This document shows, piece after piece, positions 1-64,000 of a stretch of DNA of 64,000 bases. A program made the translations under genes and the position numbers. Each line of letters starts with the position of its first letter. Positions within the stretch are counted from its first letter, which is position 1. The notes under the pieces are model-generated. The model had not been told where the DNA came from, did not search any database, and saw only the letters and a program-made list of their open reading frames with translations. The stretch spans positions 186,001 to 250,000 of the IMG/VR virus record IMGVR_UViG_3300042923_000569; one strand, given 5' to 3'.

Positions 1-258
1 ATAAGAATAAACGTACTTGTTACCAGCGACTACGGTATTAGTACTCGCATGAATATTAGTATTTCCTTGTGAAATACGATCAAAGAAACGTTCACGCTTC
101 ATAGGTTTGAAAAAACCAGTATGGTTTTTACAATAATTTCGATAGTAACGTTCAAGTATATCATAAGCTTCTACGTGAATTAGTCGGATGATTTCACGAT
201 AAGAGCCAAAGTGTTTTAGAATATCTTGAGATTGTTCTTCTGTTAGTTTGAATTCCAT
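1..258 (-). CDS. hypothetical protein, runs off the window edge
   Basis: ATG at 258 (MEFKLTEEQSQ...), frame open to base 1, overlaps end of upstream gene. Confidence 0.55.
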   Translation of the reverse strand, partial: MEFKLTEEQSQDILKHFGSYREIIRLIHVEAYDILERYYRNYCKNHTGFFKPMKRERFFDRISQGNTNIHASTNTVVAGNKYVYSY

Positions 259-791
259 TTAATAGCCCTGTTATATAAAAGATCTATTTGTTCTAACCAT
301 TTAATATCAGATTCATCAAACTCAAATGGCTTTGATGCATAGTTAATCAAAGTACTGTACTTGGTATGAAGTTCATAATTAAAAATGAAATAATCTGTAA
401 GTATTGCAGCTTCTTCAAGCATATCCAGTTCACTTTCAGTGAATCCGGGAACACCATAACTGGTAAAGATAGTATCAAATATCTTAGAATGAAATGTATG
501 TCTGAAAACTTTAAATGGTTTATTGAAAAAAGTTTTATCAAATAATGATGGATAGTTATGATTAAAATCTGTAAATCTTACACCCGACCAAGATAAATGT
601 TTACAGAATTTTTCAAAATCACAGGGTTTCCAAGTAAATAAACTAATTTTAAAATTATCAATATAATCATAGTACTTTGATAAAATTAGAAGATGTACTT
701 TTTCACTAATAGCGTACTGATAATCTGCAATAAGTGAGAACTTACTTATCAGTTCATTAGTTTCTGCTGGTGTATACGGACGTAGTTTCAT
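243..791 (-). CDS. hypothetical protein
   Basis: 182-aa ORF with AAGGA RBS. Confidence 0.75.
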   Translation of the reverse strand: MKLRPYTPAETNELISKFSLIADYQYAISEKVHLLILSKYYDYIDNFKISLFTWKPCDFEKFCKHLSWSGVRFTDFNHNYPSLFDKTFFNKPFKVFRHTFHSKIFDTIFTSYGVPGFTESELDMLEEAAILTDYFIFNYELHTKYSTLINYASKPFEFDESDIKWLEQIDLLYNRAIKWNSN

Positions 792-806
792 ATTTTCCTT
801 AAAAAT

Positions 807-828
807 AAAGCCGCAATTAAGCGGCTTT
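807..828. terminator. intrinsic terminator
   Basis: AAAGCCGC-AATTAA-GCGGCTTT hairpin after the 834..1280 stop. Confidence 0.7.
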
Positions 829-833
829 AATAA

Positions 834-1280
834 TTACTTCGCAATGTAGTTGTATTTGCTTAGATCGTTACTGTCAAGGATGCCGCAATCATATCCGTAC
901 TGTAAAATAATATCAAAACCTTCATCAACTTTACGCACAACATCTGCATAACGTTTGATATCAGAAGAATTGTCTTCTACTGATTTGATTAGCATATTAA
1001 GTACTGGTGCCATATGAGGTGCATGTAACTTCTGAAAGCGAGGTCGGCGTGTCGCTGCAAGAATATCATTCCATGAAGGAACAAAAGTCTCACCGCGAGT
1101 AGGAATATTCGCAAGAGTTATAGGAAAACTGCGATTATTACGCTTCATGAAATCTTCTTGTGCCGTGCGATAACCTCGACGGAACAATGGATGCATCTGC
1201 TTTAGTTGTTCATTTGAAAGTACTTCATTCTTCTTTTCCTGGAAGAATTCATATCCAAGATTATAATGGTTGGTGCTCAT
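834..1280 (-). CDS. hypothetical protein
   Basis: 148-aa ORF in packed operon. Confidence 0.75.
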   Translation of the reverse strand: MSTNHYNLGYEFFQEKKNEVLSNEQLKQMHPLFRRGYRTAQEDFMKRNNRSFPITLANIPTRGETFVPSWNDILAATRRPRFQKLHAPHMAPVLNMLIKSVEDNSSDIKRYADVVRKVDEGFDIILQYGYDCGILDSNDLSKYNYIAK

Positions 1281-1285
1281 CTATC

Positions 1286-1573
1286 TCAATCCTTTAGTAC
1301 TGCAACTTTCGTATTGAAAGCTCCTTTAGTATTACGTAATTCTATTGCATGTTCGAAAAGATAATCAGAATCAATATTCTTCGCCACAAGAAACTGACAA
1401 ACTAAATCTAGAATATCAGCCATTGCGTCTAGTACTGGTTCTGCTTCATCTGCATCTTTAATGCTAAGTGCAGTACTGGAAATTTGTTCCAATGCAACAC
1501 TCATAAACTCTGAAGTACTTATTGACTCGGAGTTGTTGGGAACATCATTTCCCCGAACTAAAGTTTTATTCAT
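1286..1573 (-). CDS. MazG-like / phosphoribosyl-ATP pyrophosphohydrolase-like protein, divergent
   Basis: NKTLVR start, DAMADILDLV and R..KGAF end resemble the small all-alpha NTP pyrophosphohydrolases; acidic EE motif looks degenerate. Confidence 0.45.
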   Translation of the reverse strand: MNKTLVRGNDVPNNSESISTSEFMSVALEQISSTALSIKDADEAEPVLDAMADILDLVCQFLVAKNIDSDYLFEHAIELRNTKGAFNTKVAVLKD

Positions 1574-1583
1574 AATTTATATT

Positions 1584-42688: not shown

Positions 42689-42719
42689 ATTCTACCTGCT
42701 TTTGTCAGTGTGTCAACAG

Positions 42720-43190: not shown

Positions 43191-43249
43191 GTAATATATA
43201 AATTTAAAACAAAAATAAGTACTGGCTATTATACCAGTACTATGATATA

Positions 43250-43549
43250 CTATTTCCAGATATACTTGGTTACGCCGTAATATCCGCGATGCAGTACTAC
43301 CACATCATTACTTGTCATAACATGGCTTAGGGTAATGTCTACCAGTGTTTCGCCATTAAACAACGCCATCCAGCCATAACCAGTATCAACATATACATGA
43401 TGATCGCCATCGCTTTCAACTAATTGCCATTCAAACGGTTTACCGTTCTTATTCCACAATGCCAGATCTTCGCACGGTTCTGTTACCAGGCGATGCGGAA
43501 GATCGGACATATAATCAAAACGTTTTTCCAACTGTTCGATGATTGACAT
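43250..43549 (-). CDS. small early protein
   Basis: start moved to MSIIEQ after the AATTGAGAG leader. Confidence 0.65.
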   Translation of the reverse strand: MSIIEQLEKRFDYMSDLPHRLVTEPCEDLALWNKNGKPFEWQLVESDGDHHVYVDTGYGWMALFNGETLVDITLSHVMTSNDVVVLHRGYYGVTKYIWK

Positions 43550-43625
43550 ATGAATTCTCTCAATTAAAGTAACTACATTATAAAGTACTATCATAATAAT
43601 TACAATAGTACTTTTGATAATGTTT

Positions 43626-43832
43626 TTACGCGGCGTGATACTGCTTGCCTTTTTCTGGATGTTCGCCTGATTGTTTCCAACGACAGACTTCCTGCTCTGC
43701 TTCGTGACGTGTCGCCCAATCATTCACATAGTTGTCACAGAATCGAACAACAAAACGTTTTTTGCCTGAAATATCACCAGTGAATTCAGGAGTAATTGTA
43801 TAGCGGCGATCTTTAAAAGCCATGATAGTCAT
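43626..43832 (-). CDS. small early protein
   Basis: YTITPEFTG...RFVVRFC. Confidence 0.6.
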   Translation of the reverse strand: MTIMAFKDRRYTITPEFTGDISGKKRFVVRFCDNYVNDWATRHEAEQEVCRWKQSGEHPEKGKQYHAA

Positions 43833-43970
43833 CTCACTTAATAAGGTTAGTTAAGTATTCGAGTACATGCAACAATACAGGCTGTACTGAATCCCAATTA
43901 TAAAACATCAAAGCACAAACTACAATACCTAATAAGAATTGCATTTCGCTTTCTCCTACTCAGTAACTAC

Positions 43971-44003
43971 ATTATAAAGTACTCGCAGAATTAAGCAAGT
44001 ACT
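43971..44003 (-). promoter_or_regulatory. AGTACT-bracketed early promoter cassette (representative copy)
   Basis: TTGCTT-16-TATAAT with AGTACT at 43978 and 43998; near-copies at 45215, 46056, 46488, 46966, 47310, 48460, 48999. Confidence 0.75.
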
Positions 44004-44016
44004 TTTGATAATGTTT

Positions 44017-44256
44017 TTACTTAGAATATTCTAACAGTGCATCAGCGTCAATAAACCCGGTAACGCCATATTCAGAGAAATCAACAACAGGCGTTTGAAA
44101 CTGTGCCAGGTATGCAATCGACGTGTATTTGCCATAAGTCGCAGTGATATACTCCTGCAATTTGGCGTGAACATCAGTAGAGTTTTCGTCTTTGATAACT
44201 ACTGCGTACACATCAGGAAGGCCAACAGTCGGGGAAACTTTAACAATCTTCAACAT
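44017..44256 (-). CDS. small early protein
   Basis: AATTGAGAG leader. Confidence 0.65.
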   Translation of the reverse strand: MLKIVKVSPTVGLPDVYAVVIKDENSTDVHAKLQEYITATYGKYTSIAYLAQFQTPVVDFSEYGVTGFIDADALLEYSK

Positions 44257-44310
44257 AATGTTTTACTCTCTCAATTAAAATGATAACTTAATTATACAGT
44301 ACTATCTAAA

Positions 44311-44577
44311 TTATGCAAGCGATTTGCTATATTTTAAATGTACTTCTAATGCTTGGGACATACGATTACGCATTGCCTTTACAACCATTCGACGGCAAGA
44401 TAATTCTGTTTTATCATCCAGCTTAGATAATCCAGGCCGTTTCATTGAATACTTTTGCAGTACTCGCCAGTTGGCCCCGGTCTTGCTGTATATGCTGCAA
44501 GTGATACGATCATTCAAACAATCGAACAAAACAACTAACGTCCTGGTACTATACAACATAGAATAATTCTCAGACAT
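44311..44577 (-). CDS. small early protein
   Basis: AGGAGG RBS. Confidence 0.65.
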   Translation of the reverse strand: MSENYSMLYSTRTLVVLFDCLNDRITCSIYSKTGANWRVLQKYSMKRPGLSKLDDKTELSCRRMVVKAMRNRMSQALEVHLKYSKSLA

Positions 44578-44621
44578 TTTATAACCTCCTGTTATGGGGG
44601 ATAGTTAATCCCCCGGTGTGG

Positions 44622-44942
44622 TTAGTCGTCTGGAGTTTCTACATCATATGCGGGTTCAATTTTTTCCCCGGTGTGATCATCATAGAGATCATCATTTTCA
44701 TAATTCACTTCAACCCCGACGATATGCCATTGACTATCATCGGGATCATTAAAGTTAACTTTGTGATACTCATTGATAACAGTATCGATAGCCAGGCAAC
44801 CGCCATCAGCAGTTACAAAGTACTGGTACTTTTCATAACCGCCGGAATTGAAGCCCCAATTGATTGACGGCGTACCGTCATCCAATCTGATAGCCTGGCC
44901 GATGAATTCATTTTCGAAATTGCTTTGAGTATTCGATAACAT
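44622..44942 (-). CDS. small acidic early protein
   Basis: YFVTADGGCL...VNYE...LY pattern. Confidence 0.7.
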   Translation of the reverse strand: MLSNTQSNFENEFIGQAIRLDDGTPSINWGFNSGGYEKYQYFVTADGGCLAIDTVINEYHKVNFNDPDDSQWHIVGVEVNYENDDLYDDHTGEKIEPAYDVETPDD

Positions 44943-45250
44943 GGCTGTATTCCTATCTCGTTTAAAGTAACTACATTATAAAGTACTTGATGACATATTA
45001 CAAGTACTTTTAATGTTTACTGATCCCAATAATTCTGTAAAGATTGATATGTGATTTTATATTGATTAGCCGCTAACATTAACGCATCAGTTTCTGTTTT
45101 CCCTTCCTGTTGCATAAGATGCCAGGCATAATCACTAGCTAATTCATAATCGGATGAATCAAACGCTTCTTCTCTCATATGTTGTTCCTTTCGTTTAAAG
45201 TAACTACATTATAAAGTACTCGCGAATATATGCAAGTACTGTTAATGTTT

Positions 45251-45520
45251 TTACGCTAATAAATCTGCCAGGATGTTATCGCGTTTCATTACTTCTTTTA
45301 CATAATATCGATAATGAGTAACAGCGGCAATGTAAGTTTCAAAATCAAGGTATTCAGTTTTACCGGCGATCTGTGCTGTTACATAATAACCGATTTTAAT
45401 ATGTTCGCCGTGAAAATTAAAAGAATCTTTTTGAGTCAGTACTACAATATCCTTTTGAGTAGACAATCTAGCAACTTCAGTATCTTTTGAATCAAACTCG
45501 CAAGTATCTTTAAATGACAT
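45251..45520 (-). CDS. small early protein
   Basis: own promoter and GGAG RBS. Confidence 0.65.
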   Translation of the reverse strand: MSFKDTCEFDSKDTEVARLSTQKDIVVLTQKDSFNFHGEHIKIGYYVTAQIAGKTEYLDFETYIAAVTHYRYYVKEVMKRDNILADLLA

Positions 45521-45630
45521 TTTTCTTTCTCCGTCTCGTTTCGATATAAGTAAGTATACTCTCTTTTAGTTTATGTACAAGTACTTTTTAAATTAAAAGT
45601 ATAATTATATTTTTTAACGGGCACACTTCA

Positions 45631-45698
45631 GCACCCTAATGGGTTTGACCGTTTCGCCGGATTAAGATAAGTATACTAAAAGGGCTGACTTGCGTCAA
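45631..45698 (-). ncRNA. promoter-hairpin-motif unit 6 (variant CCCATTAGGGTGC)
   Basis: TTGACG-17-TATACT; CCG-GCGAAA-CGG. Confidence 0.5.
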
Positions 45699-45711
45699 CC
45701 CCTTTTTTCAA

Positions 45712-46011
45712 TTATTCTTCCATCTGTTGCTGATCATATACATCACCGCTAGCAATCCATAGCAGTTTAACATACAAATCAGTATCGGATTCATTTTCTA
45801 ATTCGTCATCATCCCATGCACCAGTTTCTAACAGTACTGATACAATCTTTTCGCGAGGTATCGCCTGCAATGTTTCCAGGAAGTAAGGAAGTTCTGCTTT
45901 AACAGATTCTTCACAGTCGCCTGCATGATGCATAGAATAGACCTGATCCAGATCTCTGAATGTAAACTCAATCTTACCACAAGATGACGTGTACCAGATT
46001 TGATCTTGCAT
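45712..46011 (-). CDS. small acidic early protein
   Basis: start moved to MQDQ; HAGDC, ETGAWDDDEL, LLWIA. Confidence 0.7.
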   Translation of the reverse strand: MQDQIWYTSSCGKIEFTFRDLDQVYSMHHAGDCEESVKAELPYFLETLQAIPREKIVSVLLETGAWDDDELENESDTDLYVKLLWIASGDVYDQQQMEE

Positions 46012-46094
46012 TTTGTTTTCTCTCAATTAAAAGTAAGTCAGTAACTACATTATAAAGTACTCGCAGTAATAAGCAAGTACTTTTGATAATGTTT

Positions 46095-46439
46095 TTACGA
46101 TTCGTCTGCCATACTATCCACCAGCTCATAAACCGGCTTAAGTAATGCATCAAACGCCGCATGATCACCGCTAGCAGTATTAGCGATTAAATCAATACCA
46201 TCATTGCCGTTATTATAGATAAGCAGTATAGAACCGATTTGATAAGGATCATCTTTCTTTAATACGCGGAGCCAGTCCAGTCCAGTACTGTTAAGGGCTT
46301 CTTTGATTGTGCTAACATCACTTGAACGGCGTAACACGAACTCCTCACCATCAAAAATGCTAACCTCATAGCCACCAGCAAAAACAGTACTCAAAATACA
46401 ATCAATGATTCTGTTTTCGTTTTCCAGGAGTGCAGCCAT
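46095..46439 (-). CDS. small early protein
   Basis: GYEVSIFDGEE...STGLD pattern. Confidence 0.7.
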   Translation of the reverse strand: MAALLENENRIIDCILSTVFAGGYEVSIFDGEEFVLRRSSDVSTIKEALNSTGLDWLRVLKKDDPYQIGSILLIYNNGNDGIDLIANTASGDHAAFDALLKPVYELVDSMADES

Positions 46440-46526
46440 AATATCCTCTCAATTAAAAGTAATTCGTTTGCAGTAACTACATTATAAAGTACTCGCTAGT
46501 TAATGCAAGTACTTTTGATAATGTTT

Positions 46527-46919
46527 TTACTTATTCAGATAACGATGAAAGTAATACATAGGGGAATGTTGGCGATCTTTCGCTGGCGGTACTTTGTACT
46601 TACAAAGCTCATAAACCTTTTGCATCATCTGGATATCAGACGCTGGCAATGCATAGTACTCAGTCTTTTTAACATCAATCGCGAAGTGTTGAAGTAGTAA
46701 AGCCCTGGCTGATTCAGCACTTAAGCCAGTGTGAAGAATAGCGGCTTTTTCTTCAAATGCTTTAAGCATTTGCTCGTTAGGCAAATTCTTACGTGGTAAC
46801 GCATTGATAGTTGCCTTATGGAATTTCTTACCATTGGCTAACAGCAATTCATGTACTGACATTTCTTTGCCATTGAACAAGAAACAAAAACCGTTTTCAT
46901 AACCTCTGACTTCTAACAT
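46527..46919 (-). CDS. small early protein
   Basis: AATTGAGAGG leader. Confidence 0.7.
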   Translation of the reverse strand: MLEVRGYENGFCFLFNGKEMSVHELLLANGKKFHKATINALPRKNLPNEQMLKAFEEKAAILHTGLSAESARALLLQHFAIDVKKTEYYALPASDIQMMQKVYELCKYKVPPAKDRQHSPMYYFHRYLNK

Positions 46920-46925
46920 AGTAAT

Positions 46926-47348
46926 CCTCTCAATTAAAATTAACTACTCAATAAGTTTATTATATAGTACTCGCTTGTTATTGCAAGTACTATCGAACTA
47001 CTTATTATGATTATCATTGTACAGGCGATCACATAATCGCCCATGATAAACCCGCCCATTCTTTAAACGTTTACCCAAAGGCATAAACCATTTAAGATGG
47101 AAACCAGTAAGAAAGATTATATCTTTCATTCGGAAACTTCTACAGTCCAGCCTTTATAGGCGTCGATGTAATTGATCCAGTCCTGGTCATTCCAACGGGC
47201 AGTAGTTACACCAGGAGCTTTAAACTTGTAATGTCCAGCTTTATATGCTTCCATCTTAGTCATGTATCACCTCTCAATTAAAATTAACTACTCAATAAGT
47301 TTATTATATAGTACTCGCTTGTTATTGCAAGTACTATCGAACTACTTA
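46926..47348. repeat. 79-bp perfect direct repeat of a promoter/RBS cassette (46926-47004 and 47270-47348)
   Basis: identical CCTCTCAATTAAAATT...AGTACTATCGAACTACTTA copies. Confidence 0.85.
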
Positions 47349-47747
47349 CAGATCTTTTTTACGCTTCACATCATTGCAGTTATCATAGTAAGGAATCGAT
47401 AACATATTACACAACGTGTACAGGGTACGCACACGAACATTGTCAAAATCAACAAAGTTCCCCTGTACTGCTTCGCGGAAAATAGTATAACCAGTGTATT
47501 CATACTGATTACCATGCCCAGGCATAAACTCATTGCGAACTACATCGATCCAGACCTGTTCACCTTCAGGCCGGTTATAGTGGTTAGCGTTTAACTCGTT
47601 TGCCTTTTCCACATCAACCAGGCAGGCGACATAAGTACTGTGATACGTTACGCCTAATGAATCAGTCCAGCGATTACCAGTAAGAGTAATGCCCTTGATA
47701 TCTTCCAGGGTTAAACGTGCGATTGTGATTCTAGTATCTTTGTCCAT
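47346..47747 (-). CDS. small early protein
   Basis: RW.D..G.TYHS...G.QYEYT...V.RKKDL pattern. Confidence 0.7.
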   Translation of the reverse strand: MDKDTRITIARLTLEDIKGITLTGNRWTDSLGVTYHSTYVACLVDVEKANELNANHYNRPEGEQVWIDVVRNEFMPGHGNQYEYTGYTIFREAVQGNFVDFDNVRVRTLYTLCNMLSIPYYDNCNDVKRKKDL

Positions 47748-47874
47748 CTGGTAAACCTCTCAGTTAAAATTGTGTATCTCGTTTCGATATAAAAGATTAT
47801 ACGCGATTCTAGTTTATGTGCAAGTACTTTTTAAAATGAATTTATAATTATATTTTTTTAATGGGTATAACTCT

Positions 47875-47942
47875 GTACCCTATGGGCTAAGCCATTTCTC
47901 TGGCGTATGAGTACTATAACAAAAGAGGCTAACTTTCGTCAA
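47875..47942 (-). ncRNA. promoter-hairpin-motif unit 7 (CCCATAGGGTAC)
   Basis: TTGACG-18-TATAGT; GCCA-GAGAAA-TGGC. Confidence 0.5.
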
Positions 47943-47959
47943 CCCCTTTTGATAATTAA

Positions 47960-48415
47960 TTATAGATACTTTTCAGGGATAGAATCTTGCTGAATGATTT
48001 GCTTTTCAGCCGCGAGTTCTGTTACAAACTCTTTCAGCTTTTTAAAGTACTTGTCATAACCCGCGATTACTTTATCAGCATCGCCTTTAATCTTGCGTAC
48101 TGCAATCTTGCGGCTTTCAGCGTACATATGCGGCTTTTCAGTAATGCAAGTTACCCAGGCACCGTCAAATTCAACTTCCAGATCCTGGAGTTCAACTTCT
48201 GAATCATTAAACTTGATTCCTTTGTGAATGTATGACCGGAAAGTTACTGGATCATTCATTCTGATTTTTGCGGAAACATCATTAATGTCGCCAATCAAAC
48301 CGCAGAAGATAGCAATACCGCCACCTAGTGCTAGTGGGCTGATTCGAATACTTCCATTAGGAAAGTACTTCAGAAATGATTCTGTTACTGCTGCCTGGAG
48401 TTCGTTGGCTTTCAT
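47960..48415 (-). CDS. hypothetical early protein
   Basis: start moved to MKANE. Confidence 0.7.
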   Translation of the reverse strand: MKANELQAAVTESFLKYFPNGSIRISPLALGGGIAIFCGLIGDINDVSAKIRMNDPVTFRSYIHKGIKFNDSEVELQDLEVEFDGAWVTCITEKPHMYAESRKIAVRKIKGDADKVIAGYDKYFKKLKEFVTELAAEKQIIQQDSIPEKYL

Positions 48416-48497
48416 GTTCTGTTCTCTCAATTAAAAAGTTACTATATAACTAATTATAAAGTACTCGCTAGTTAATGCAAGTACTTTTGATAATTAA

Positions 48498-48941
48498 TTA
48501 TTCAACAGTTCCCGCCAGGATCTCTCCTACGCGTACCATTTCATAACGATCAACGATTGATAAAGATAGCTTAGTATCTTTTTGGCGTACACTATACCAG
48601 GTATCACCTTCAAACACATAACGGGTAATGTTTTTGTTTGCGATAAGGAACATCAACCATGATTTAGTAGTTAGTGGCTCTGTGCCAGTTTCACCACGAT
48701 CACGCCCATAAGCTACAGTATAGCCAGGAACCTTTTTATTGAAGCTGTGACCTTCTGGACACTCGATAGATTTATCCAGTACTGACAGATCACCCAGGGC
48801 GATTAGTGCCTTTGCACGTTCTGCATCGTTGTAATGCTCAACTAACATTCTACCAGTGTGACCGATATAGCCATCATAGTTTACAGATGACCAGGTAACA
48901 TGTTCGCCGTCTTTGATTGCAATAACTGCTGGAGTACCCAT
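48498..48941 (-). CDS. conserved phage early protein
   Basis: MGT...YDGY..HTG..L..HY...LI.LGDLSVL...YGRDRGE. Confidence 0.75.
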   Translation of the reverse strand: MGTPAVIAIKDGEHVTWSSVNYDGYIGHTGRMLVEHYNDAERAKALIALGDLSVLDKSIECPEGHSFNKKVPGYTVAYGRDRGETGTEPLTTKSWLMFLIANKNITRYVFEGDTWYSVRQKDTKLSLSIVDRYEMVRVGEILAGTVE

Positions 48942-49097
48942 TTTTAAATCCTCTCAATTAAAAGTAACATCGTCTCGTTTCGATATAGGTAATTATATAG
49001 TACTGGTAATCGAAAGCAAGTACTTTTTAAAATAAAAGTATAATTAAGAATCAAAAATAAATTTGCATCTAAAGAAAAATGATGATACGATGTTTAT

Positions 49098-49192
49098 GCG
49101 GCGAAAATGTGAGGTTCGCCGCAAGTCCAACGAATGATAACGCATTGTATTACTTTATAGGATAGCTATGGGTTTGCTATCCTTTTTTTTTT
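49098..49192 (+). ncRNA. candidate ~95-nt small RNA
   Basis: TTGCAT-17-TACGAT (extended -10) promoter; 8-bp 5' hairpin; unpaired core; AGGATAGC/GCTATCCT terminator plus a long T run; no ORF. Confidence 0.6.
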
Positions 49193-49207
49193 ATTTTCGA
49201 AAAGGTA

Positions 49208-49282
49208 TTGACTCCACCAGCCAAATAACCGATAATCACATCAAGACGGCGAAACGTCCTTTCCCATAGGGTGCGGAGCTAT
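49208..49282 (+). ncRNA. promoter-hairpin-CCCATAGGGTGC unit 8 (Chi in spacer)
   Basis: TTGACT-17-GATAAT; GACG-GCGAAA-CGTC; motif at 49263-49274. Confidence 0.55.
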
Positions 49283-49319
49283 GTCTTTAAAGTACTAATT
49301 TTCTTACGGGTATTCCTCT

Positions 49320-49387
49320 GCACCCTATGGGCTACGCCTTTGTCTCGGCTTGTATGTATTATTGCATTTTTCGGGGATTGAAGTCAA
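49320..49387 (-). ncRNA. promoter-hairpin-CCCATAGGGTGC unit 9
   Basis: TTGACT-18-AATAAT; GCC-GAGACAAA-GGC; motif at 49320-49331. Confidence 0.5.
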
Positions 49388-49405
49388 CCCCCGATTTGTA
49401 AAGAT

Positions 49406-49762
49406 TTATTCTTCTTGCGTTACACATTCCAGGCGGTAAGTACTGAAATGTTTACGGAATAAATCGCAAGCCTGATCGCCGTTTTCCGCTTGCATTATAA
49501 TCGAACCTTCTCGATTATTTTTAATATCGAAATATGTTACTATCCAGCCACGCGTTTTGATTTCAGATAGTGGCAAGTGAATTGATCCACCGCTGGTTAA
49601 TTGACCTTCAGGATCTTTGTTGATTGCTTCCTGGTCGATAGTCAGTGAATAGTTTTCACCATCTACAACGTGGAACAATTCAACAATCGGATCGATGTTT
49701 CCACGTTTGTTTGCGATGCGTTCCAGTGTAGAAAGTACTCCGCGAAGTTCTGATAATCTCAT
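49406..49762 (-). CDS. small early protein
   Basis: 118-aa ORF. Confidence 0.7.
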   Translation of the reverse strand: MRLSELRGVLSTLERIANKRGNIDPIVELFHVVDGENYSLTIDQEAINKDPEGQLTSGGSIHLPLSEIKTRGWIVTYFDIKNNREGSIIMQAENGDQACDLFRKHFSTYRLECVTQEE

Positions 49763-49801
49763 TTAAAATTTACTCTCGTTTGTTGGTGTGTGGTAATAGT
49801 A

Positions 49802-50203
49802 CTATACTACTTCAGAAGTAGCAAGAATATTTTCAAAGTATTCGATTAAATCACAAAGTAACTTGTAGCGAAGTTTACCAGGTTCAGAATCCATTACGCA
49901 AAGGTTACGCTGATTCCAATGTAAGTTAACAGCCCGATTAACATCATTATCAGTTAATTGCATTTCAACCGGATAACCGCAGTGTAAACCCATTTCCACA
50001 AATACAGGCTGCAAGTATTCGTGATCGATCCCGGTAACTTCACTGTTAGGAGTGTGGGCGAATACGTGCCAGCAGATACCATGCTGTCTGGTTAGGTTGA
50101 ATGATTCACCGTTGATAGTGGTGTAAGTAACATCACGATCTAAACAGTCTTTCATTGCTGTTAGTACTTTCAGGACTAAAACTGCCTGCTCTGTACGTTT
50201 CAT
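49802..50203 (-). CDS. small early protein
   Basis: start moved to MKRTEQ; GIC...YPV...R..L pattern. Confidence 0.7.
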   Translation of the reverse strand: MKRTEQAVLVLKVLTAMKDCLDRDVTYTTINGESFNLTRQHGICWHVFAHTPNSEVTGIDHEYLQPVFVEMGLHCGYPVEMQLTDNDVNRAVNLHWNQRNLCVMDSEPGKLRYKLLCDLIEYFENILATSEVV

Positions 50204-50337
50204 TGTATTGCCTCTCAATTAAAATTTGTTTTGTTTCGATACAGGGAAGTTTACACTACTCGAAAGTTTATACAAGTACTTTTATAAAATATTTTTAAAC
50301 TCTCTGTAACGCATTCTAAGCGATTTAAAGTACTGCC

Positions 50338-50619
50338 TTACACCTTCAACGATTGAACGTTAAAAGCCCCGCTAATAGGCTTACACGCAAGATCTATAGC
50401 ATAGTTCGCTTTCTTGTGGATTATGTACATACACGAATCAAACTGATGATTATACGGCATATCATAAACCCGGCGTTGTACAAGTTCACCACTAACAACA
50501 AAGGCCAGGTAGCCGCTGAAGGTACAACTACGCGGGCCAGCACTGGTCATCGTTTTAGCAATACGGGTACGGGGATCAATCAGGGACGAAATAGGCTTAA
50601 GGTTAAGATTGTTATTCAT
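50338..50619 (-). CDS. small early protein
   Basis: start moved to MNNNL. Confidence 0.6.
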   Translation of the reverse strand: MNNNLNLKPISSLIDPRTRIAKTMTSAGPRSCTFSGYLAFVVSGELVQRRVYDMPYNHQFDSCMYIIHKKANYAIDLACKPISGAFNVQSLKV

Positions 50620-50766
50620 GGCGTTTAGTCTCAATTAAAAGGTAGAATCTAAAACGCTCTGTAATCAATTCTAAGCGTTTCTAATAGTACTTTAAGCGAA
50701 TGTATCACAGTACTATTAGAAATGCTTAGCGGGGCATATAGCCCCGCCATGCTGTATTACTTTGTA

Positions 50767-51411
50767 TTACGCGGCGGTATCTTCAGAGGCTACGCGGAAA
50801 GTTTCGATGAAAGTTTCGCGGTCCATGTTTTTAGAAGCTACCAGATCTTTGAGTTCCTGGCTCATGTTGCCTTTTTCCGGCATATCGTACTGTTTGCCAT
50901 CGACTTCAACAGTGACGCGGTTGTATGCGTTGTTGCTGCCGGTAAGTGACGCTTTGATCTTCTTACCTACACCAGCAACCGCCGCCTGAGCTACTGCCAG
51001 ATCCACGCCACCAGCTACCAGAAGTTTGAGCATTTTTTCACGTTCTTCTTTCGCTTTCTCTTCCGCTTCAGCGTTCAGACGTTCACGTTCTGCCTGAGCT
51101 TTAACGCGGGCTTCTTCGCGGGCCGCTTCAGCACGTGCGGCTTCTTCTTTCTGGTACTGTACAGCAGCCGGGATTGCTTTAGACGCTGCAACCAGAATTT
51201 TAGAAATCACGTCAGTGTCAGTTGTTTTATCAACAAAGTACTGAGCCAGGTTAGTCGCAACAGTGTTTACGTGATCAGCAATGTCTGCTTTGTGCTGAGC
51301 CAGTACTTCTTTACTGTGTGTCTTACCTTCTTCCGGTGCCGCCAGGGTAGGAGCCTGAGCGAACAGGATTGAATTCAGTGTTACTTTAGGAGCTTTAGAA
51401 GTGTTAGTCAT
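50767..51411 (-). CDS. Ala/Glu/Lys-rich coiled-coil protein with a small C-terminal domain
   Basis: 214 aa; codon use suggests high expression; first gene of the leftward early region. Confidence 0.8.
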   Translation of the reverse strand: MTNTSKAPKVTLNSILFAQAPTLAAPEEGKTHSKEVLAQHKADIADHVNTVATNLAQYFVDKTTDTDVISKILVAASKAIPAAVQYQKEEAARAEAAREEARVKAQAERERLNAEAEEKAKEEREKMLKLLVAGGVDLAVAQAAVAGVGKKIKASLTGSNNAYNRVTVEVDGKQYDMPEKGNMSQELKDLVASKNMDRETFIETFRVASEDTAA

Positions 51412-51670
51412 GATATTACCCTCGAATTTTTTAAGTTAATTTGTTTGGCCTGATTGTTTCGGCTTGATTAAAATTTAAACTACTTGTTTCTTTCAGTCAA
51501 CTACTATTTTCAACTTTCAAGAAACTTTTTTTCTTTCTATCGTCTGGAGCATTTCGCCCTTTCGATAACCAACATCTTACACCATCCTTTCTAACTAGCA
51601 AGTACTTTTTAAAAACTTTTTTTCGTTCTATCCAAAAGAGAGTTTCTATCTTCAGGACTTGCTAGCCAGG

Positions 51671-51683
51671 TTGTTAAAGAGCG
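51671..51683 (-). promoter_or_regulatory. boxA antitermination element
   Basis: CGCTCTTTAACAA on the minus strand, ~20 nt past a TTGCAG-16-TACTAT promoter. Confidence 0.65.
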
Positions 51684-51941
51684 GTGTTCCGTGTTGATGT
51701 GGTAATAGTACACTAACCATAAAACTCTGCAAGCACTTTCTTATAAAAACTTATAACTTTTTTCATTCGTCGTTTTTCTTCCTTTATACGCGTAAAGAAA
51801 CCCACAACACATAGGAAGCATTTACAGCCCTTTAAAGTACTAATCTAAGTGTTTACCAGGCGTAATCCTCCAGCCTCTTATAGTGCGTCCTATGCGTTCC
51901 TATATAGAAGAAACTATTTTCAATCTTTTTAAAGAAAATGC

Positions 51942-52012
51942 TTGCTTCTCTGATTCAGTACTGTATAATCTTTTATATCGAAGCGAAATTCGTTATCCCA
52001 TAGGGTGCGGAG
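51942..52012 (+). ncRNA. promoter-hairpin-CCCATAGGGTGC unit 10
   Basis: TTGCTT-16-TATAAT; CGAA-GCGAAA-TTCG; motif at 51997-52008. Confidence 0.55.
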
Positions 52013-52045
52013 ATCCGTCTATTGCTTTTTTACTTTTTCCTGGGT

Positions 52046-52121
52046 ATAGCTCCGCACCCTATGGGAAAGGCCATTTCGCTGGCTTGTACGTATTATTGCA
52101 TAATTCGATCAGTACTGTCAA
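52046..52121 (-). ncRNA. promoter-hairpin-CCCATAGGGTGC unit 11
   Basis: TTGACA-18-AATAAT; GCCA-GCGAAA-TGGC; motif at 52054-52065. Confidence 0.55.
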
Positions 52122-52267
52122 CAAAAAAGAAAATTAAAATAATGCTTGATCTGGCTGGTGGCTGTGATATTATTACCCCGTCAACACGAAAAGACAGCTA
52201 TTGATTCTGCCTGGTACTAACCAGACGCGGAAGGGGAACTAATGGAAAAACGCAATGAAAAAGCGTT

Positions 52268-52395
52268 TAGCCATCTAAACGTCTAGAGTGCTAGCCACCT
52301 AGATGGATAGCCATTTAGCCGTCTAAACGTCTAGACATATAACCATCCAGAAGTACAGCCATCTTTCCATCTACACTGCCAGAAGTCTATCCGTC
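52268..52395. repeat. 16 x 8-bp degenerate tandem array, consensus TAG(C/A)C(A/G)TC
   Basis: tagccatc taaacgtc tagagtgc tagccacc tagatgga tagccatt tagccgtc taaacgtc tagacata taaccatc ... tatccgtc, in unbroken phase. Confidence 0.8.
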
Positions 52396-53075
52396 TGTTG
52401 ATAGCAGATAGGGATAGTACACCCAAAATTTAAGTAAAGTACAACATCGATCTATCCATAATTCTTTGACTAGGATCATTACATCCTGAAATATACAATA
52501 CAAAAAATAATAGCACTTAGGATAGTTCCTGGTACTGTAAACATCTACAGCAGGAATTATATTAAGTGCTATCAACGTACTTCTAATGTATATTCTCAGT
52601 ACTAAAGATTCCTGAGAAAGCAGGGTGTCCAGTCAAGACAACTTCGTTACAACGTTACGAGGGGAATCTCGTATAGTACTGTTACAGTCGGGATTCACCT
52701 TCCTGGTTACTCTCTTCCGCAACATGGATATATCTTACCATATCTAATTTGCACGTCAAGTACTTTATTTTTAATTTCCCACATTCTAGTATTCCCTGGG
52801 ACTGTTGTTTTGTCCAGTGATATCACGCTTCGGTTATAAAATTTACACAACGTTCGAAGTACTTTAAATTTAAGAATATCCTGAAACTTTTTTGTACTTT
52901 TGATGATCCAGGAAAAATCTGATAGGTACTCCAAATTTTTTAGGATTCGTCTTTTTTCTAACGCACCAACCAAGTTTTTCCCATACCTCATTGTACCTTT
53001 TTTAAAAAAGGTCATTTGTACAAAATGTGCTATTTACATTCGACTTCAGGAAGAGATATAGCGGCAGGGGGTAAC

Positions 53076-53155
53076 AGTACTGTTATGATGTTCTTAGTAC
53101 TGTTACCATACTCTTAGTACTGTTATGATGTTCTTAGTACTATATCATTACTATT
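53076..53155. repeat. 4 x 20-bp tandem repeat, each unit starting with AGTACT
   Basis: AGTACT at 53076, 53096, 53116, 53136; units 1 and 3 identical. Confidence 0.85.
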
Positions 53156-53396
53156 AATTCTCTGCAATATTAAAGTACTTTAAACATAATCATAAACCTT
53201 CGTAAACGCAATATAAGCGTGTTTGAATCCTGTAGATATCGCTGTGCATATCTCCAGCAAGCAAACAGAAGCTCTCAGAGAGCGTCCTATGCGGTTATAG
53301 GGGGTATTTGGAGGGTATATTATGGTATAGTTCTTAGGTACTGAAATGTTGTATATAGGGTAAATACCTATAATATAATAATGGAGAGGGAAGATT

Positions 53397-61846: not shown

Positions 61847-62776
61847 TTAAGCAGATACGGATGTATTCTTTGTAAAGATAGTCAGCAAACGAGTCCATAA
61901 TGAACGTTTTTCAGTTACATTAAGTACTTGAATTGTTTCTTTCTCTGGACTTGTTTCGGTACTTTGTTTTTTAAGTTCATCACGATGTTTAGAATACTCA
62001 GCCTTAACAATATGGTTAAGTTTATTACACAGAGTTTCCATATTCTTTTTACTTTTATTATTAATAATCCCATGACCTTTATTAGAAGCAATAACTTCTT
62101 TACAGATTCGGATATTAATTAATTCTTTTGCAAACTCATTAATAAATTCATCCCATGCAGTATTTGATACCTTAATTAAATCTTTGAAATTAAGTGGCAT
62201 CAATGCCGGAATGAACTGATTATGTTTATTATAATGATTAATCAGTGCCAGCTTGTAATGTCCAGGCATAGTACTGAACTGAACAGATGGAATCTTGACA
62301 CTATGTTCTTTCTTAAATCCATTCTTATTCAAGTCCAGATAAGTAAAATTACGTTTTACTTTATTAATTTCAGCATTTGGATTTAAGTTGTTCAACAAGC
62401 ACCGATCATACCAGTACTTGAACTCTGCGTATTCAGCAAAAAGATTACTACGCATAAGGTTACATTTCTCACACAGCAAGTGCAAGTTATGCAACAAATT
62501 AGAACCTTCAAGAGAGTTAAGTAAGTTATGGTCAACTGTCATACGACGACCATTACCAGCGAACATAATCATACCGTACATATCATGAAGTTTGAATACA
62601 CCTTCTGAACCACAGCAATGACATTTTAATCCATCGCGTGTAGCTATATTGATAGCACGGATAGTACACGATTTAAATGGATAGTGTTTACGCATTTGTT
62701 CTAAGTTGTTGAGAACAAACTCACCTTTAAACGTTACATTCTTTACTGATGAAATATTCATTTGATTACCGTGCAA
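61847..62776 (-). CDS. HNH endonuclease-domain protein
   Basis: RDG..CHCCG...TVDH...GSN...NL.LLCEKCN. Confidence 0.75.
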   Translation of the reverse strand: MHGNQMNISSVKNVTFKGEFVLNNLEQMRKHYPFKSCTIRAINIATRDGLKCHCCGSEGVFKLHDMYGMIMFAGNGRRMTVDHNLLNSLEGSNLLHNLHLLCEKCNLMRSNLFAEYAEFKYWYDRCLLNNLNPNAEINKVKRNFTYLDLNKNGFKKEHSVKIPSVQFSTMPGHYKLALINHYNKHNQFIPALMPLNFKDLIKVSNTAWDEFINEFAKELINIRICKEVIASNKGHGIINNKSKKNMETLCNKLNHIVKAEYSKHRDELKKQSTETSPEKETIQVLNVTEKRSLWTRLLTIFTKNTSVSA

Positions 62777-63110
62777 TTAATTCATTTTCGTAAACAACCC
62801 AGCGTGCACCGCTGAACACAATAGCTTCGGCTTTATCGATATCCGCAGTACTATGTGGAGAAGAAAGAATGCGAACACGATCACAAATCAAGCCGTTTGC
62901 ATCGTCAACATAGGTGAATGATTCATCAAAGATTTTGCGGTACTTAGCATAATCTTCGTCACTAACATCATACACGAGATCATAAGACATACTATTAATA
63001 GTTTCAACTACATATGGAATGTCTGAACCTTGCATAAAAACTTTGTCTCCCACTTTAAATTTACTTGGTGGGATGATTGCAGTTTGCAGAAGATTTTTTA
63101 ATTGGCTCAT
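62766..63110 (-). CDS. hypothetical protein
   Basis: KFKVGDKV...VYENEL, YorP-like pattern. Confidence 0.7.
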   Translation of the reverse strand: MSQLKNLLQTAIIPPSKFKVGDKVFMQGSDIPYVVETINSMSYDLVYDVSDEDYAKYRKIFDESFTYVDDANGLICDRVRILSSPHSTADIDKAEAIVFSGARWVVYENELIAR

Positions 63111-63141
63111 TTAAAATGTTCTCTCTTGATTTGATAAGGTT

Positions 63142-63177
63142 ATCATAACAAAAAGGGCTGACCGAAGTCAACCCCTT
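63142..63177 (-). promoter_or_regulatory. terminator-promoter fusion
   Basis: same GGGGTTGAC-TTCG-GTCAGCCC hairpin; TTGACT-18-TATGAT. Confidence 0.7.
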
Positions 63178-63180
63178 ATA

Positions 63181-63510
63181 TTAATAATCTTTAAATTTTG
63201 AACGAATTTTTTTGGTTTTTCCAAAGCCAAACCATACCATGAAACACAGTAATACTACTACGGAGATTCCAACATAGTTAATAATTAGTGTGCCGCATAA
63301 TGTAAATTTGCTTGGGTCATTATCCATAGTAATATCAAGAATAATACACACGATATTAACGAAAGAAAATATATATAATGTTTCTTCTATACCGTCAAAA
63401 TACTTATTAACTAACTTATGACGGTTAAAGATTCTAAGTACTAATGCACATAATGCTACCAGTACTATTAAAGCCAGAACTAATGTTGAGATAAAGTTAT
63501 AGATTAACAT
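63181..63510 (-). CDS. 3-TM membrane paralogue
   Basis: three helices; FN..KLV.K...LY shared with 63517. Confidence 0.7.
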   Translation of the reverse strand: MLIYNFISTLVLALIVLVALCALVLRIFNRHKLVNKYFDGIEETLYIFSFVNIVCIILDITMDNDPSKFTLCGTLIINYVGISVVVLLCFMVWFGFGKTKKIRSKFKDY

Positions 63511-63516
63511 ATAGCC

Positions 63517-63846
63517 TTATGTATCAATAAATGAAGAACGAAATTCTGATAATATCATACATATCAGAGCAATAACAATAATCGAACCAATTAACCCTAT
63601 GGTTGACATTAATATAACTGCTAATGCCGCATATTGATCAATTTTTGGTGGATGGTATATGTCAACTGAAAGACAAATCATAAGAAATAAGTTATATGCA
63701 CTTAAATAATACAATGAATCATCATTACCAGAAAGTTTCGCTACTAACTTTCTTTTATTAAAGAAGCATAGTATCCATAAAGAACATACATAAAATATGT
63801 ACACACCACCTACTACAGAAAAAATTGTGTTAATCCAAAAAATCAT
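63517..63846 (-). CDS. 3-TM membrane paralogue
   Basis: three helices; paralogue of 63181. Confidence 0.7.
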   Translation of the reverse strand: MIFWINTIFSVVGGVYIFYVCSLWILCFFNKRKLVAKLSGNDDSLYYLSAYNLFLMICLSVDIYHPPKIDQYAALAVILMSTIGLIGSIIVIALICMILSEFRSSFIDT

Positions 63847-64000
63847 ATTAGAATCTCTAATGAAAAGGCACAGTTAAGTGCCTTATAGTTTTAGTTAATC
63901 TTGGTACATTTTGGTGATTCACCGGTACTGAGAATATCACCTTCAGAATTTTGGGTAATGATAGTAGCACTGTTACTTTTCTTGTAAACATAAATTACAG

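Follow-up and report, generated by a model that had tools for sequence, protein, structure and literature searches.

Jumbo phages of the RaK2/GAP32/CBB type, a clade of 350-kb enterobacterial viruses, purge most 6-bp palindromes from their genomes but keep about 1,000 copies of the palindrome AGTACT under selection. Copies also occupy fixed places in early promoters and cluster next to the boundary of the terminal repeat, which is predicted in the phage studied here. An unidentified factor therefore probably reads this word. Full-text searches found no paper that mentions AGTACT in connection with these phages.

Over-representation of AGTACT and selection on the word

We analyzed a 64,000-bp stretch of DNA (the window), which corresponds to positions 186,001-250,000 of a 357,873-bp genome (G000). 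The initial annotation, made from the sequence alone, had described AGTACT as strongly over-represented throughout the window, with about 29 copies in the first 10 kb, in all coding frames and in non-coding DNA. This observation is confirmed: exactly 29 copies lie within positions 1-10,000, and the whole window contains 257 copies compared with 21.5 expected from base composition. The full genome harbors 991 copies, whereas order 0, order 1 and order 2 Markov models predict 121, 110 and 217, respectively. With an observed/expected ratio of 9.03 (99th percentile of all hexamers, 2.67), AGTACT ranks first of 4,096 hexamers and is the only over-represented palindrome among 64. In contrast, 23 other 6-bp palindromes and GCGC are absent, and the premise that this phage otherwise depletes palindromes is strongly true.

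The annotation had named in advance a result that would overturn its claim, namely that the enrichment vanishes once codon and dipeptide usage are controlled for and that no modification or specific binder is found. This refutation fails when synonymous codons are shuffled while keeping every protein sequence and the codon usage of each gene. Under these conditions 238±13 coding sites are expected, but 865 are observed (z 49), and shuffling of codon order lowers the expectation to 145. Shuffles that additionally avoid the 26 absent words give 239±14, indicating that the excess is not a by-product of purging other palindromes. All three reading frames, which contain 428, 135 and 302 sites, and non-coding DNA are enriched. 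The density is 3.57 per kb in non-coding DNA (123 sites compared with 10.3 expected) and 2.67 per kb in coding DNA. Of all Ser-Thr pairs, 55% are encoded by AGT-ACT (15% expected), and 57% of Val-Leu pairs by GTA-CTN (22% expected), of which 73% follow a codon ending in A (32% background). Even the choice of dipeptides is affected: the observed/expected ratio is 1.52 for Ser-Thr but 1.00 for Thr-Ser.

Next, we asked if the signature is present in other phages. Every enterobacterial RaK2-like jumbo phage tested has 793-1,313 sites, including 1,114 in Kaldavass and 1,313 in Hallingskeid. XbC2 and XaC1, which are reported on Xanthomonas, are equally rich. No such enrichment was found in PA5oct (15 sites), T4 (29), T5 (23), lambda (5), P1 (1), FelixO1 (20), Atu_ph07, XacN1 (0) or E. 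coli K-12; the counts for T4, T5, lambda, P1 and FelixO1 are all below those of their reversed-word controls. PA5oct represents a sister lineage with similar GC content, and P1, XacN1 and PA5oct deplete AGTACT. Relative to E. coli K-12, the phage carries about 32 times more sites per kb. The same genomes show an extreme form of restriction-site avoidance, with 16-28 six-base palindromes at zero copies and GCGC absent.

Individual sites are conserved about twice as often as other hexamers. The conserved fraction is 0.40-0.47 compared with 0.19-0.21 between G000 and Kaldavass, 0.65-0.70 compared with 0.38 between GAP32 and CBB, and 0.77-0.79 compared with 0.56 between Kaldavass and XbC2. Against RaK2 it decays to near baseline (0.09-0.17 compared with 0.09-0.11) while the density is unchanged, and synonymous codons are retained more often inside the motif. 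The sites are dispersed almost Poisson-like over the genome: the coefficient of variation of the gaps is 0.92, the largest gap is 2.2 kb, and the per-gene chi2/df is 0.93. The preferred context is H-AGTACT-D, weakly ttC-AGTACT-Gaa. These symmetric flanks, together with the nearly equal enrichment of AGTACN and NGTACT although 90% of the genes lie on one strand, point to recognition of the duplex by a symmetric reader.

Placement in early promoters and next to the terminal-repeat boundary

Two placements of AGTACT are special (Table 1). In a conserved class of early promoters, two copies bracket the –35 element at about –39..–34 and –19..–14. This double-site design is present in G000, Kaldavass, XbC2, GAP32, CBB, RaK2 and Hallingskeid, but not in PA5oct. 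The cassettes within one genome are paralogous repeats, so that their site positions are not fully independent, and AGTACT is not restricted to regulatory DNA, since 863 of the 991 sites lie inside genes.

Table 1. Features of the window discussed in the text (positions refer to the 64,000-bp window).
Position	Strand	Feature	Description
1..64000		Dispersed AGTACT	257 copies, about 4.0 per kb, 12 times the base-composition expectation; part of the 991 genomic copies
20850..21398	-	Dam-type N6-adenine DNA methyltransferase	Pfam PF05869, E 3.4e-27, 95.6 bits (cut-off 28.1); 84% identical to Kaldavass CDS0605; probably GATC-specific, not the AGTACT reader
33160..53058		Predicted direct terminal repeat and early region	Collapsed to one copy in this assembly; 5.08 AGTACT per kb compared with 2.63 per kb elsewhere; boundaries from homology to both CBB DTR ends; inner boundary uncertain (32.3-34.8 kb), depth steps in related-strain contigs at 32.3 kb (X3) and 34.84 kb (X4)
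46056..46081	-	Example of the double-AGTACT early promoter	aaaAGTACTTGCTTattactgcgAGTACTtTATAAT; one AGTACT fused to the –35 hexamer, a second ending 1 nt before the –10 hexamer, starts 20 bp apart
48460..48485	-	Second example of the double-AGTACT early promoter	AGTACTTGCATtaactagcgAGTACTtTATAAT
37146/37169, 41242/41265, 43978/43998, 44982/45003, 45215/45235, 46488/46508, 46966/46986, 47310/47330, 48460/48480, 48999/49019		Site pairs of the same promoter design	
53036..53075	-	Conserved terminus box	AGTACT-GTTACCCCCTGCCGCTA|TATCTCTTCCTGAAGTCGAATG; predicted physical end / terminal-repeat start between 53059 and 53058; homologous (2 mismatches in 28) to the exact DTR start of phage CBB; contigs of related strains break here (X3 ends at 53066; X4 has 53.1x depth to the left and 32.4x to the right)
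53076..53179		Densest AGTACT cluster of the genome	Five copies starting at 53076, 53096, 53116, 53136 (exact 20-bp period, 3.3 copies of a 20-bp repeat) and 53174; immediately outside the predicted terminal-repeat boundary; only 170-nt window of the genome with 5 sites

The second placement is a cluster 17-100 bp outside the terminal-repeat boundary, which was found in G000, CBB, GAP32, Kaldavass, fENko-Kae01 and fEgEco12 and adjoins independently determined terminal-repeat starts. In G000, CBB, GAP32 and Kaldavass, 3-5 copies lie within 170 nt outside the terminal-repeat start, while copies are located at –21/–44/–101 in fENko-Kae01 and at –27/–48/–98 in fEgEco12; the nearest copy is 17-27 bp away. 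However, the cluster is the unique genome maximum only in G000, because in CBB, GAP32 and Kaldavass 9-46 other 170-nt windows reach the same count. A similar arrangement, with several copies of a palindromic hexamer clustered and phased next to the packaging cut, is seen in terminase recognition repeats such as the pac site of P1, where clustered TGATCA/G hexamers are read with Dam methylation. But pac hexamers are confined to pac, whereas about 99% of the AGTACT copies are elsewhere in the genome, and no methylation of AGTACT is reported in relatives. No gp16-type small terminase family was detected, and binding by terminase was not assayed.

Possible readers of AGTACT

Based on these observations, we propose that AGTACT is a selected recognition word on double-stranded phage DNA, most likely read by a two-fold-symmetric, not yet identified DNA-binding protein that is probably encoded by this clade of T4-related jumbo phages (Mimasvirus, Eneladusvirus, Asteriusvirus, Alcyoneusvirus and relatives). 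We favor this explanation over the alternatives, but only tentatively. Our data demonstrate that selection keeps about one site per 360 bp everywhere and in any frame by steering synonymous codons and even dipeptide choice, that sites are preserved above background but replaced over long evolutionary distances, so that density rather than exact position matters, and that the density differs strongly from that of E. coli K-12. It is an inference from these data that the factor coats or marks phage DNA as a phage-specific signature, for chromosome organization or protection or as a specificity signal for packaging, and that AGTACT is not a methylation mark in virion DNA. It is likewise inferred that the same factor acts at two high-occupancy places: the site pairs two helical turns apart at the strong early promoters, which could control early transcription, and the phased cluster where terminase must cut.

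No binder could be identified. Pfam/PHROG scans of about 60 clade-specific proteins gave no DNA-binding candidate that spans the clade. Six-frame family searches found no HU/IHF, TrpR or ScaI-nuclease relative in G000, and no RHH, AbrB/MazE or TetR relative in G000 or six other clade genomes. Moreover, a 6-bp palindrome is shorter than typical helix-turn-helix dimer operators, and no known system explains why a regulator or packaging factor would need about 1,000 sites inside genes.

The interpretation given in the initial annotation is partly supported. A selected genome-wide recognition site is well supported, and its suggestion of a DNA-organizing or packaging protein gains indirect support from the cluster at the terminal-repeat boundary. 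Its other suggestion, a self-mark for a modification enzyme with the Dam-like methyltransferase as candidate, is not supported, and we consider it improbable. In its favor, a Dam-family and a C5 methyltransferase are conserved across the rich clade and absent from PA5oct, about 1,000 unprotected ScaI-type sites would be a liability for a phage that purges other palindromes, and promoter and packaging-site copies could then work as methylation-sensitive switches, like the methylated palindromic hexamers (GATC) of P1 pac. But a native-versus-WGA nanopore methylome, the kind of data the annotation had asked for, reports only GATC and CCWGG for Kaldavass and Hallingskeid, plus TGCAT in Kaldavass, and nothing at AGTACT despite more than 1,100 sites in each (PMC11780129). 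The numbers of methyltransferases (3 and 2) equal the numbers of motifs found, and the enzyme of the window is the ortholog of one of those listed. This evidence rests on the motif table of one paper rather than on a test aimed at this word, and the DNA of the phage studied here was not examined. GATC 6mA is reported in both phages, but host Dam could also be responsible, and the target of the window's enzyme was not measured. G000 encodes only one Dam-type and one C5 enzyme, no N4/N6 PF01555 enzyme, and gives no match to PF09569 (RE_ScaI) at E≤1 in six frames. Finally, a protective mark does not by itself explain enrichment.

Among the remaining alternatives, recognition by a replication or recombination enzyme is unlikely but ranks highest. 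Such an enzyme could be a primase with a start signal needed on both strands, a symmetric endonuclease making occasional breaks or nicks to seed T4-style recombination-dependent replication, or a sequence-dependent junction resolvase that needs frequent cleavable sites before packaging. The density and near-Poisson spacing suit a process that must be able to start anywhere, the half-words GTACT/AGTAC are themselves 1.6-2.9 times enriched, and a palindrome serves both strands at half the coding cost. In addition, the clade is T4-related, and group 2.2 jumbo phages carry uncharacterized REase-fold and GIY-YIG proteins (PMC7824862). However, this view does not explain the double sites in early promoters or the phased terminal cluster, and known primases read about 3 nt of single-stranded DNA, not a 6-bp palindrome. 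Nor is a ScaI-type nuclease family present, and no nick-associated coverage drops were reported for Kaldavass or Hallingskeid, although the same study detected them in another phage (PMC11780129). In that study, the nick-associated motif WACTRTGAC of Pseudomonas phage Rembedalsseter and relatives is likewise a lineage-specific conserved word whose function is still unknown, but it has 13 strand-specific copies marking physical nicks, whereas AGTACT has about 1,000 symmetric copies with no reported nick or modification.

A host factor of Enterobacterales that the phage captures or exploits, for example RNA polymerase (perhaps after phage modification) or a nucleoid protein related to SlmA, is less likely still. 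All rich phages infect, or are very close to phages that infect, Enterobacterales, the word sits inside σ70-type promoters, and no phage-encoded candidate was found. The site of the nucleoid-occlusion factor SlmA of E. coli, GTGAGTACTCAC, has AGTACT as its core (Cho et al. 2011; Tonthat et al. 2011), and this 12-bp palindrome is read by a symmetric protein that decorates a chromosome. But other phages of the same hosts are not enriched, while XbC2 and XaC1, reported on Xanthomonas, are equally rich. The SlmA-type flank is the least favored: G at –1 amounts to 8% compared with about 18% background, and GAGTACTC occurs 4 times (3.4 expected), whereas CAGTACTG occurs 116 times (4.7 expected). SlmA also has tens of sites per 4.6 Mb, not 1,000 per 0.36 Mb. 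The absence of any function, with the excess being a compositional, codon-pair, repeat or mutational/repair-bias artefact, for example very-short-patch-type conversion towards AGTACT or fallout from removing other palindromes, is very unlikely and already largely refuted by the synonymous and codon-order shuffles, which leave a 3.6-6-fold excess with or without forced avoidance of the absent palindromes. The GTAC core and the codons AGT, ACT and GTA are common in this genome, and the maximal-order Markov expectation (870) is close to the observed count because the sub-words are themselves enriched. But non-coding DNA is enriched 12-fold, and the sites are dispersed rather than repeats and conserved above matched hexamers. 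One-mismatch neighbors are not depleted (0.55-2.9, mostly above 1; AATACT/AGTATT 1.10, AGCACT/AGTGCT 1.29, outer variants 1.6-2.9), unlike the precursors in very-short-patch repair.

Implications for RaK2-like jumbo phages

Genome-wide over-represented oligomers such as Chi (GCTGGTGG) of E. coli, KOPS and uptake sequences are likewise kept several-fold above expectation in coding DNA by selection on codon choice, differ greatly in density between self and foreign DNA, and turn over individually while density is kept. They are, however, asymmetric and strand- or orientation-skewed, and their readers (RecBCD, FtsK, uptake machinery) are known. AGTACT is a perfect palindrome for which no orientation is possible, is carried by a virus, is 9-12-fold enriched and has no known reader; a RecBCD/AddAB-type reader enzyme was not assayed. 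True Chi is separately about 5-fold enriched in this phage. A more far-reaching possibility, which we regard as doubtful although our data do not exclude it, is that these phages use a dense palindromic "self" barcode instead of base modification. In this view, a novel clade-encoded protein would read AGTACT to tell phage from host DNA and thereby couple control of the early promoters in the terminal repeat, recognition of the concatemer junction by the packaging machinery, and genome-wide coating or selection of the 358-kb chromosome. This would be a sequence-based equivalent of what hydroxymethylcytosine does for T4.

RaK2-, GAP32-, CBB- and 121Q-type jumbo phages are widespread in plant, food, gut and wastewater samples and are being developed against Klebsiella, E. 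coli, Salmonella, Erwinia and Pectobacterium. The word is a diagnostic for recognizing this clade in metagenomes and points to ScaI sensitivity and recoding limits for anyone engineering these phages. It also gives a handle to fish out the reader protein and offers a testable link between early transcription, terminal-repeat formation and packaging. About 1,000 copies are kept at the price of codon and even amino-acid choice in genomes that otherwise erase palindromes, which implies an important and entirely uncharacterized DNA-recognition step in the life cycle of these phages.

Abundance of AGTACT and its independence of codon usage

The window is bases 186,001–250,000 of a 357,873-bp virus record (hereafter G000). 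The record is 36% G+C, uses the standard code, is about 90% coding, and carries roughly nine genes in ten on the minus strand. Protein and DNA searches place it among the T4-related "RaK2-like" jumbo phages of Enterobacterales. Its nearest relatives are Erwinia phage Kaldavass, Xanthomonas phage XbC2, Cronobacter phage GAP32 and Pectobacterium phage CBB, with which it shares about 67% median protein identity, so that it represents a new genus-level relative.

We first recounted the word by computation. The initial annotation had estimated about 29 copies of AGTACT in the first 10 kb of the window, and this observation held: there are exactly 29, and 257 in the whole window against 21.5 expected. 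The genome contains 991 copies, compared with 121, 110 and 217 expected under order-0, order-1 and order-2 Markov models. AGTACT is the top-ranked hexamer at 9.0 times expectation, whereas the 99th percentile of all hexamers is 2.67. In the same genome, 23 of the 64 six-base palindromes have zero copies and GCGC is absent (293 expected). The remark that the excess runs against the usual depletion of palindromes in phages was therefore right and even understated, since this phage erases palindromes and AGTACT is the single exception. Kaldavass, XbC2, GAP32, CBB and RaK2 show the same extreme purging: across the six genomes, between 16 and 28 six-base palindromes have zero copies, including nearly all of those with four or more G/C, and GCGC is absent. 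Lineage-specific additions are CTTAAG in GAP32, CBB and RaK2, GATATC in the Mimasvirus group, and TTGCAA, ATCGAT and GTGCAC in Kaldavass and XbC2. PA5oct shows none of this.

Next, we tested if the excess can be explained by codon usage, dipeptide usage or composition. With simple gene calls, 863 sites lie wholly within coding DNA; counted inside the called genes they number 865 (428/135/302 by frame). Shuffling synonymous codons within each gene gives 238±13 sites (z = 49), and shuffling codon order gives 145. The excess is also not a by-product of purging other palindromes, since shuffles in which the 26 absent words were forced to stay absent give 239±14. Of all Ser-Thr pairs, 55% are written AGT-ACT (15% expected), and 57% of Val-Leu pairs are GTA-CTN (22% expected), 73% of which follow a codon ending in A (32% background). 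Even protein sequence is bent: Ser-Thr occurs at 1.52 times expectation against 1.00 for Thr-Ser, and Val-Leu at 1.21 against 0.96 for Leu-Val. Non-coding DNA holds 123 sites against 10.3 expected. The initial annotation had stated in advance that its claim would fall if the enrichment vanished under control for codon and dipeptide usage and no modification or specific binder was found; the enrichment did not vanish.

We then examined the shape of the signal. A longer hidden motif or a repeat family was rejected, because only position –1 (and symmetrically +6) carries flank information, with C or A preferred and G avoided, and because the spacing is Poisson-like. CAGTACTG occurs 116 times against 4.7 expected and GAGTACTC 4 times against 3.4, and in RaK2 there is a weak ttCAGTACTGaa. 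Outer one-base variants (NGTACT/AGTACN) are 1.6–2.9 times enriched, whereas inner variants are near 1. None is depleted as a repair-conversion model would need, and conversion of the very-short-patch type was rejected on these grounds. AGTACN and NGTACT are about equally enriched although transcription is 90% one-directional, which argues for recognition of the duplex by a symmetric reader and not of RNA or one strand. Spacing is close to random (gap CV 0.92, largest gap 2.2 kb, per-gene chi2/df 0.93), and one of the longest AGTACT-free gaps covers the stretch of the large terminase gene and the ORF wedged upstream of it. Helical phasing of all sites was not found, the only excess being at 18–22 bp, from promoter pairs and the array near the predicted genome end. 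Density is similar in genes shared with distant relatives, clade-specific genes and orphans (2.2–3.4 per kb).

Another over-represented word is the E. coli Chi octamer GCTGGTGG, which occurs 14 times in G000 and its complement 19 times, against 2.1 and 3.7 expected. Related words (CACCAGCA, TGCTGGTG) head the list of non-GTAC over-represented octamers. A similar excess is seen in GAP32 and RaK2, and none in PA5oct.

Distribution and conservation of sites in the phage clade

To determine how widely the trait is distributed, we counted AGTACT in related and unrelated genomes. In the eleven rich genomes the reversed control word occurs only 122–200 times. The trait belongs to the phage clade and not to the hosts, and a host-driven effect is disfavored by the counts in T4, T5, lambda, P1 and FelixO1.

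Copies of AGTACT in phage genomes and in E. coli K-12
Genome	AGTACT count
Kaldavass	1,114
XbC2	1,105
GAP32	1,011
CBB	1,235
Serratia BF	1,072
RaK2	937
phAPEC6	918
Munch	850
fENko-Kae01	941
SD-1_S14	793
Hallingskeid	1,313
PA5oct (more distant Pseudomonas relative)	15 (89 expected; no palindrome purging either)
T4	29
Atu_ph07	25
XacN1	0
lambda	5
T5	23
P1	1
FelixO1	20
E. coli K-12	400 in 4.64 Mb (0.086 per kb, against 2.8 per kb in the phage)

In other phages the word is depleted: besides PA5oct, this concerns P1 and XacN1, in which the control word occurs 35 and 127 times, respectively. AGTACT is therefore a restriction liability elsewhere. A scan of IMG/VR records for three close AGTACT copies, which covered only part of the collection and is not a survey, mostly hit in-frame Ser/Thr-rich coding repeats apart from relatives. 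It also returned a 31,807-bp contig annotated as provirus that has 103 AGTACT (13 for the control word) but only three genes about 44% identical to G000. This fragment may be a more distant lineage that shares the trait.

In codon alignments, AGTACT is kept at the same position about twice as often as the average hexamer in the same frame. For the first three comparisons listed below, it lies in the 95th–99th percentile of all frequent words. Against RaK2 positional conservation falls almost to baseline, while both genomes keep the same density. AGT and ACT codons are retained more often inside the word than outside it when the amino acid is unchanged. Sites are thus individually protected but replaceable in the long run, and what is held constant is density.

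Fraction of hexamers kept at the same position in codon alignments
Comparison	AGTACT	Average hexamer
G000 vs Kaldavass	0.40–0.47	0.19–0.21
GAP32 vs CBB	0.65–0.70	0.38
Kaldavass vs XbC2	0.77–0.79	0.56
G000 vs RaK2	0.09–0.17	0.09–0.11

Placement at early promoters and beside the predicted genome end

Two placements of the word stand out. The strong σ70-like early promoters carry two copies, one of which is fused to the –35 hexamer (aaaAGTAC-TTGCtt / TTGACA), while the other ends one base before TATAAT, with starts 20–22 bp apart. This design recurs in G000, Kaldavass, XbC2, GAP32, CBB, RaK2 and Hallingskeid and is absent from PA5oct, although the promoter cassettes within a genome are paralogous.

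The other placement is at the predicted genome end, which adjoins the only place in G000 with five sites in 170 nt. In CBB, GAP32 and Kaldavass, other windows reach the same site count. The cluster adjoins a box, AGTACT-GTTACCCCCTGCCGCTA|TATCTCTTCCTGAAGTCGAATG, homologous to the exact start of the 22,456-bp direct terminal repeat of CBB, which we verified as an identical repeat in the record. GAP32 and Kaldavass have the same box, with 3–4 AGTACT just outside it. In fENko-Kae01, which has an annotated PhageTerm repeat, and in fEgEco12, whose repeat was confirmed by digests (PMC13070987), copies are located at –21/–44/–101 and –27/–48/–98 from the repeat start, although their sequence there is different. 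Contigs of related strains break at this point, and in one run the word depth is 53 on the repeat side and 32 on the other. All runs holding G000 itself are kept only as contigs, so raw reads were not examined for ends or modification. The window therefore contains the predicted virion DNA end and appears to contain the whole terminal repeat of roughly 20 kb together with the early region, collapsed to one copy, where AGTACT density is double (5.1 against 2.6 per kb). The 127-bp "terminal repeat" of the record is only an assembly overlap. Both predicted boundaries share a CGCT(A)|TA junction.

Features in G000 (window coordinates unless marked G000)
Feature	Coordinates	Strand	Remarks
T4-like nucleic-acid repair set	3865-5283, 13206-14144, 14834-15994	–	ATP-dependent DNA ligase, polynucleotide kinase/phosphatase and RNA ligase 1
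Predicted direct terminal repeat and early region	33160-53058		Inner boundary uncertain: ~33160 by homology, steps at 32.3 or 34.8 kb in related-strain contigs
ParE-like toxin-domain protein with unannotated 154-aa ORF directly upstream	39512-39781 and 39799-40263	–	PF24732, E 1e-10; ParE-like protein conserved across the clade; may be a toxin-antitoxin-like pair in the early region
48-bp tandem repeat, 2.2 copies	52266-52373		Non-coding stretch between the last early gene and the repeat boundary
Predicted virion DNA end	53058|53059
AGTACT cluster	53076-53179		Five sites, including four copies at an exact 20-bp period
Island just beyond the repeat boundary	53397-57103	+	RCC1/Kelch beta-propeller proteins (673 and 383 aa), annotated in relatives as "regulator of chromosome condensation"; the name reflects the repeat family, not a DNA function
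Large terminase	G000:39413-41116	–	A 171-aa ORF, poorly conserved in the clade, is wedged upstream (stretch G000:39413-42240)
AGTACT-free gap	G000:39,956-41,733		One of the longest
Weak "leucine zipper" hit	G000:295766-296047		No basic region

DNA modification, candidate readers and interpretation

The initial annotation had proposed a selected genome-wide recognition site, either bound by a DNA-organizing or packaging protein or serving as a self-mark for a modification enzyme, with a Dam-like methyltransferase as candidate. G000 encodes one Dam-type (PF05869) and one C5 methyltransferase and no PF01555 enzyme. The two are the orthologs (84% and 85%) of Kaldavass CDS0605 and CDS0246. In the study that isolated Kaldavass and Hallingskeid, native and amplified DNA were compared on nanopore, and 6mA at GATC and 5mC at CCWGG, plus TGCAT in Kaldavass, were reported (PMC11780129). 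Motif numbers match methyltransferase numbers, and coverage drops indicating nicks were seen only in an unrelated Pseudomonas phage. With more than 1,100 AGTACT per genome, a modification there should have been the most obvious motif. This evidence is indirect, because it concerns relatives and was not a targeted test, but it makes the methylation-mark reading unlikely and assigns the candidate enzyme, probably, to GATC. In addition, fEgEco12 DNA cuts as predicted with ten enzymes, so the DNA is not globally hypermodified. The proposed interpretation is thus partly supported: the recognition site fits the data, the modification mark does not find support.

To identify a reader of the word, we scanned about 60 of the 135 genes shared by the rich genomes and missing from PA5oct against Pfam and PHROG. 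These scans found an IF3-like protein, lysozymes, NUDIX, a radical-SAM enzyme, dCMP deaminase, a ParE-like toxin and DUF1190, but no DNA binder. A small XRE-type HTH next to the phage sigma factor is not detectable in RaK2, and an ESM Atlas look-up of the ORF upstream of the ParE-like gene was uninformative. RE_ScaI, TrpR and HU/IHF families are absent from G000, RHH_1, MazE/AbrB and TetR_N families from G000 and six other clade genomes, and the T4 gp16 family was not found either. As no specific protein is claimed to bind, no protein–DNA complex was modeled.

Several other explanations compete with a clade-encoded binding factor. The word could be an enzyme site for priming, breaking or resolving DNA, it could be read by a host factor, which the low counts in other phages disfavor, or it could be a modification mark, which the published methylomes make unlikely. 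None of the three is ruled out. In contrast, an absence of function is essentially excluded by the shuffles, the non-coding excess and the lack of depleted neighboring words.

In how it is maintained, AGTACT behaves like Chi or other selected genomic words, but it is palindromic and viral. It resembles the P1 pac hexamers in its cluster at the packaging site, but it is not confined there, and it shares its core with the SlmA site but has the opposite flanks. Full-text searches, restricted to open-access papers, found no paper that mentions AGTACT together with any of these phages. Selected genome-wide oligomers as such are already known, but there is a real chance that the reader and mechanism are new in this case.

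The excess, its maintenance by selection and the constancy of its density follow from the sequence analyses, whereas the existence of a reader and its roles are inferred. Taken together, the data fit a recognition word on duplex DNA, read by a two-fold-symmetric factor that the clade itself supplies. Because we could not identify the protein, we put this explanation forward only tentatively. In this view, genome-wide occupancy would be the main role of the factor, providing a phage-specific mark for chromosome organization, protection or packaging specificity, and high-occupancy arrays at the early promoters and next to the packaging cut would be its secondary roles.
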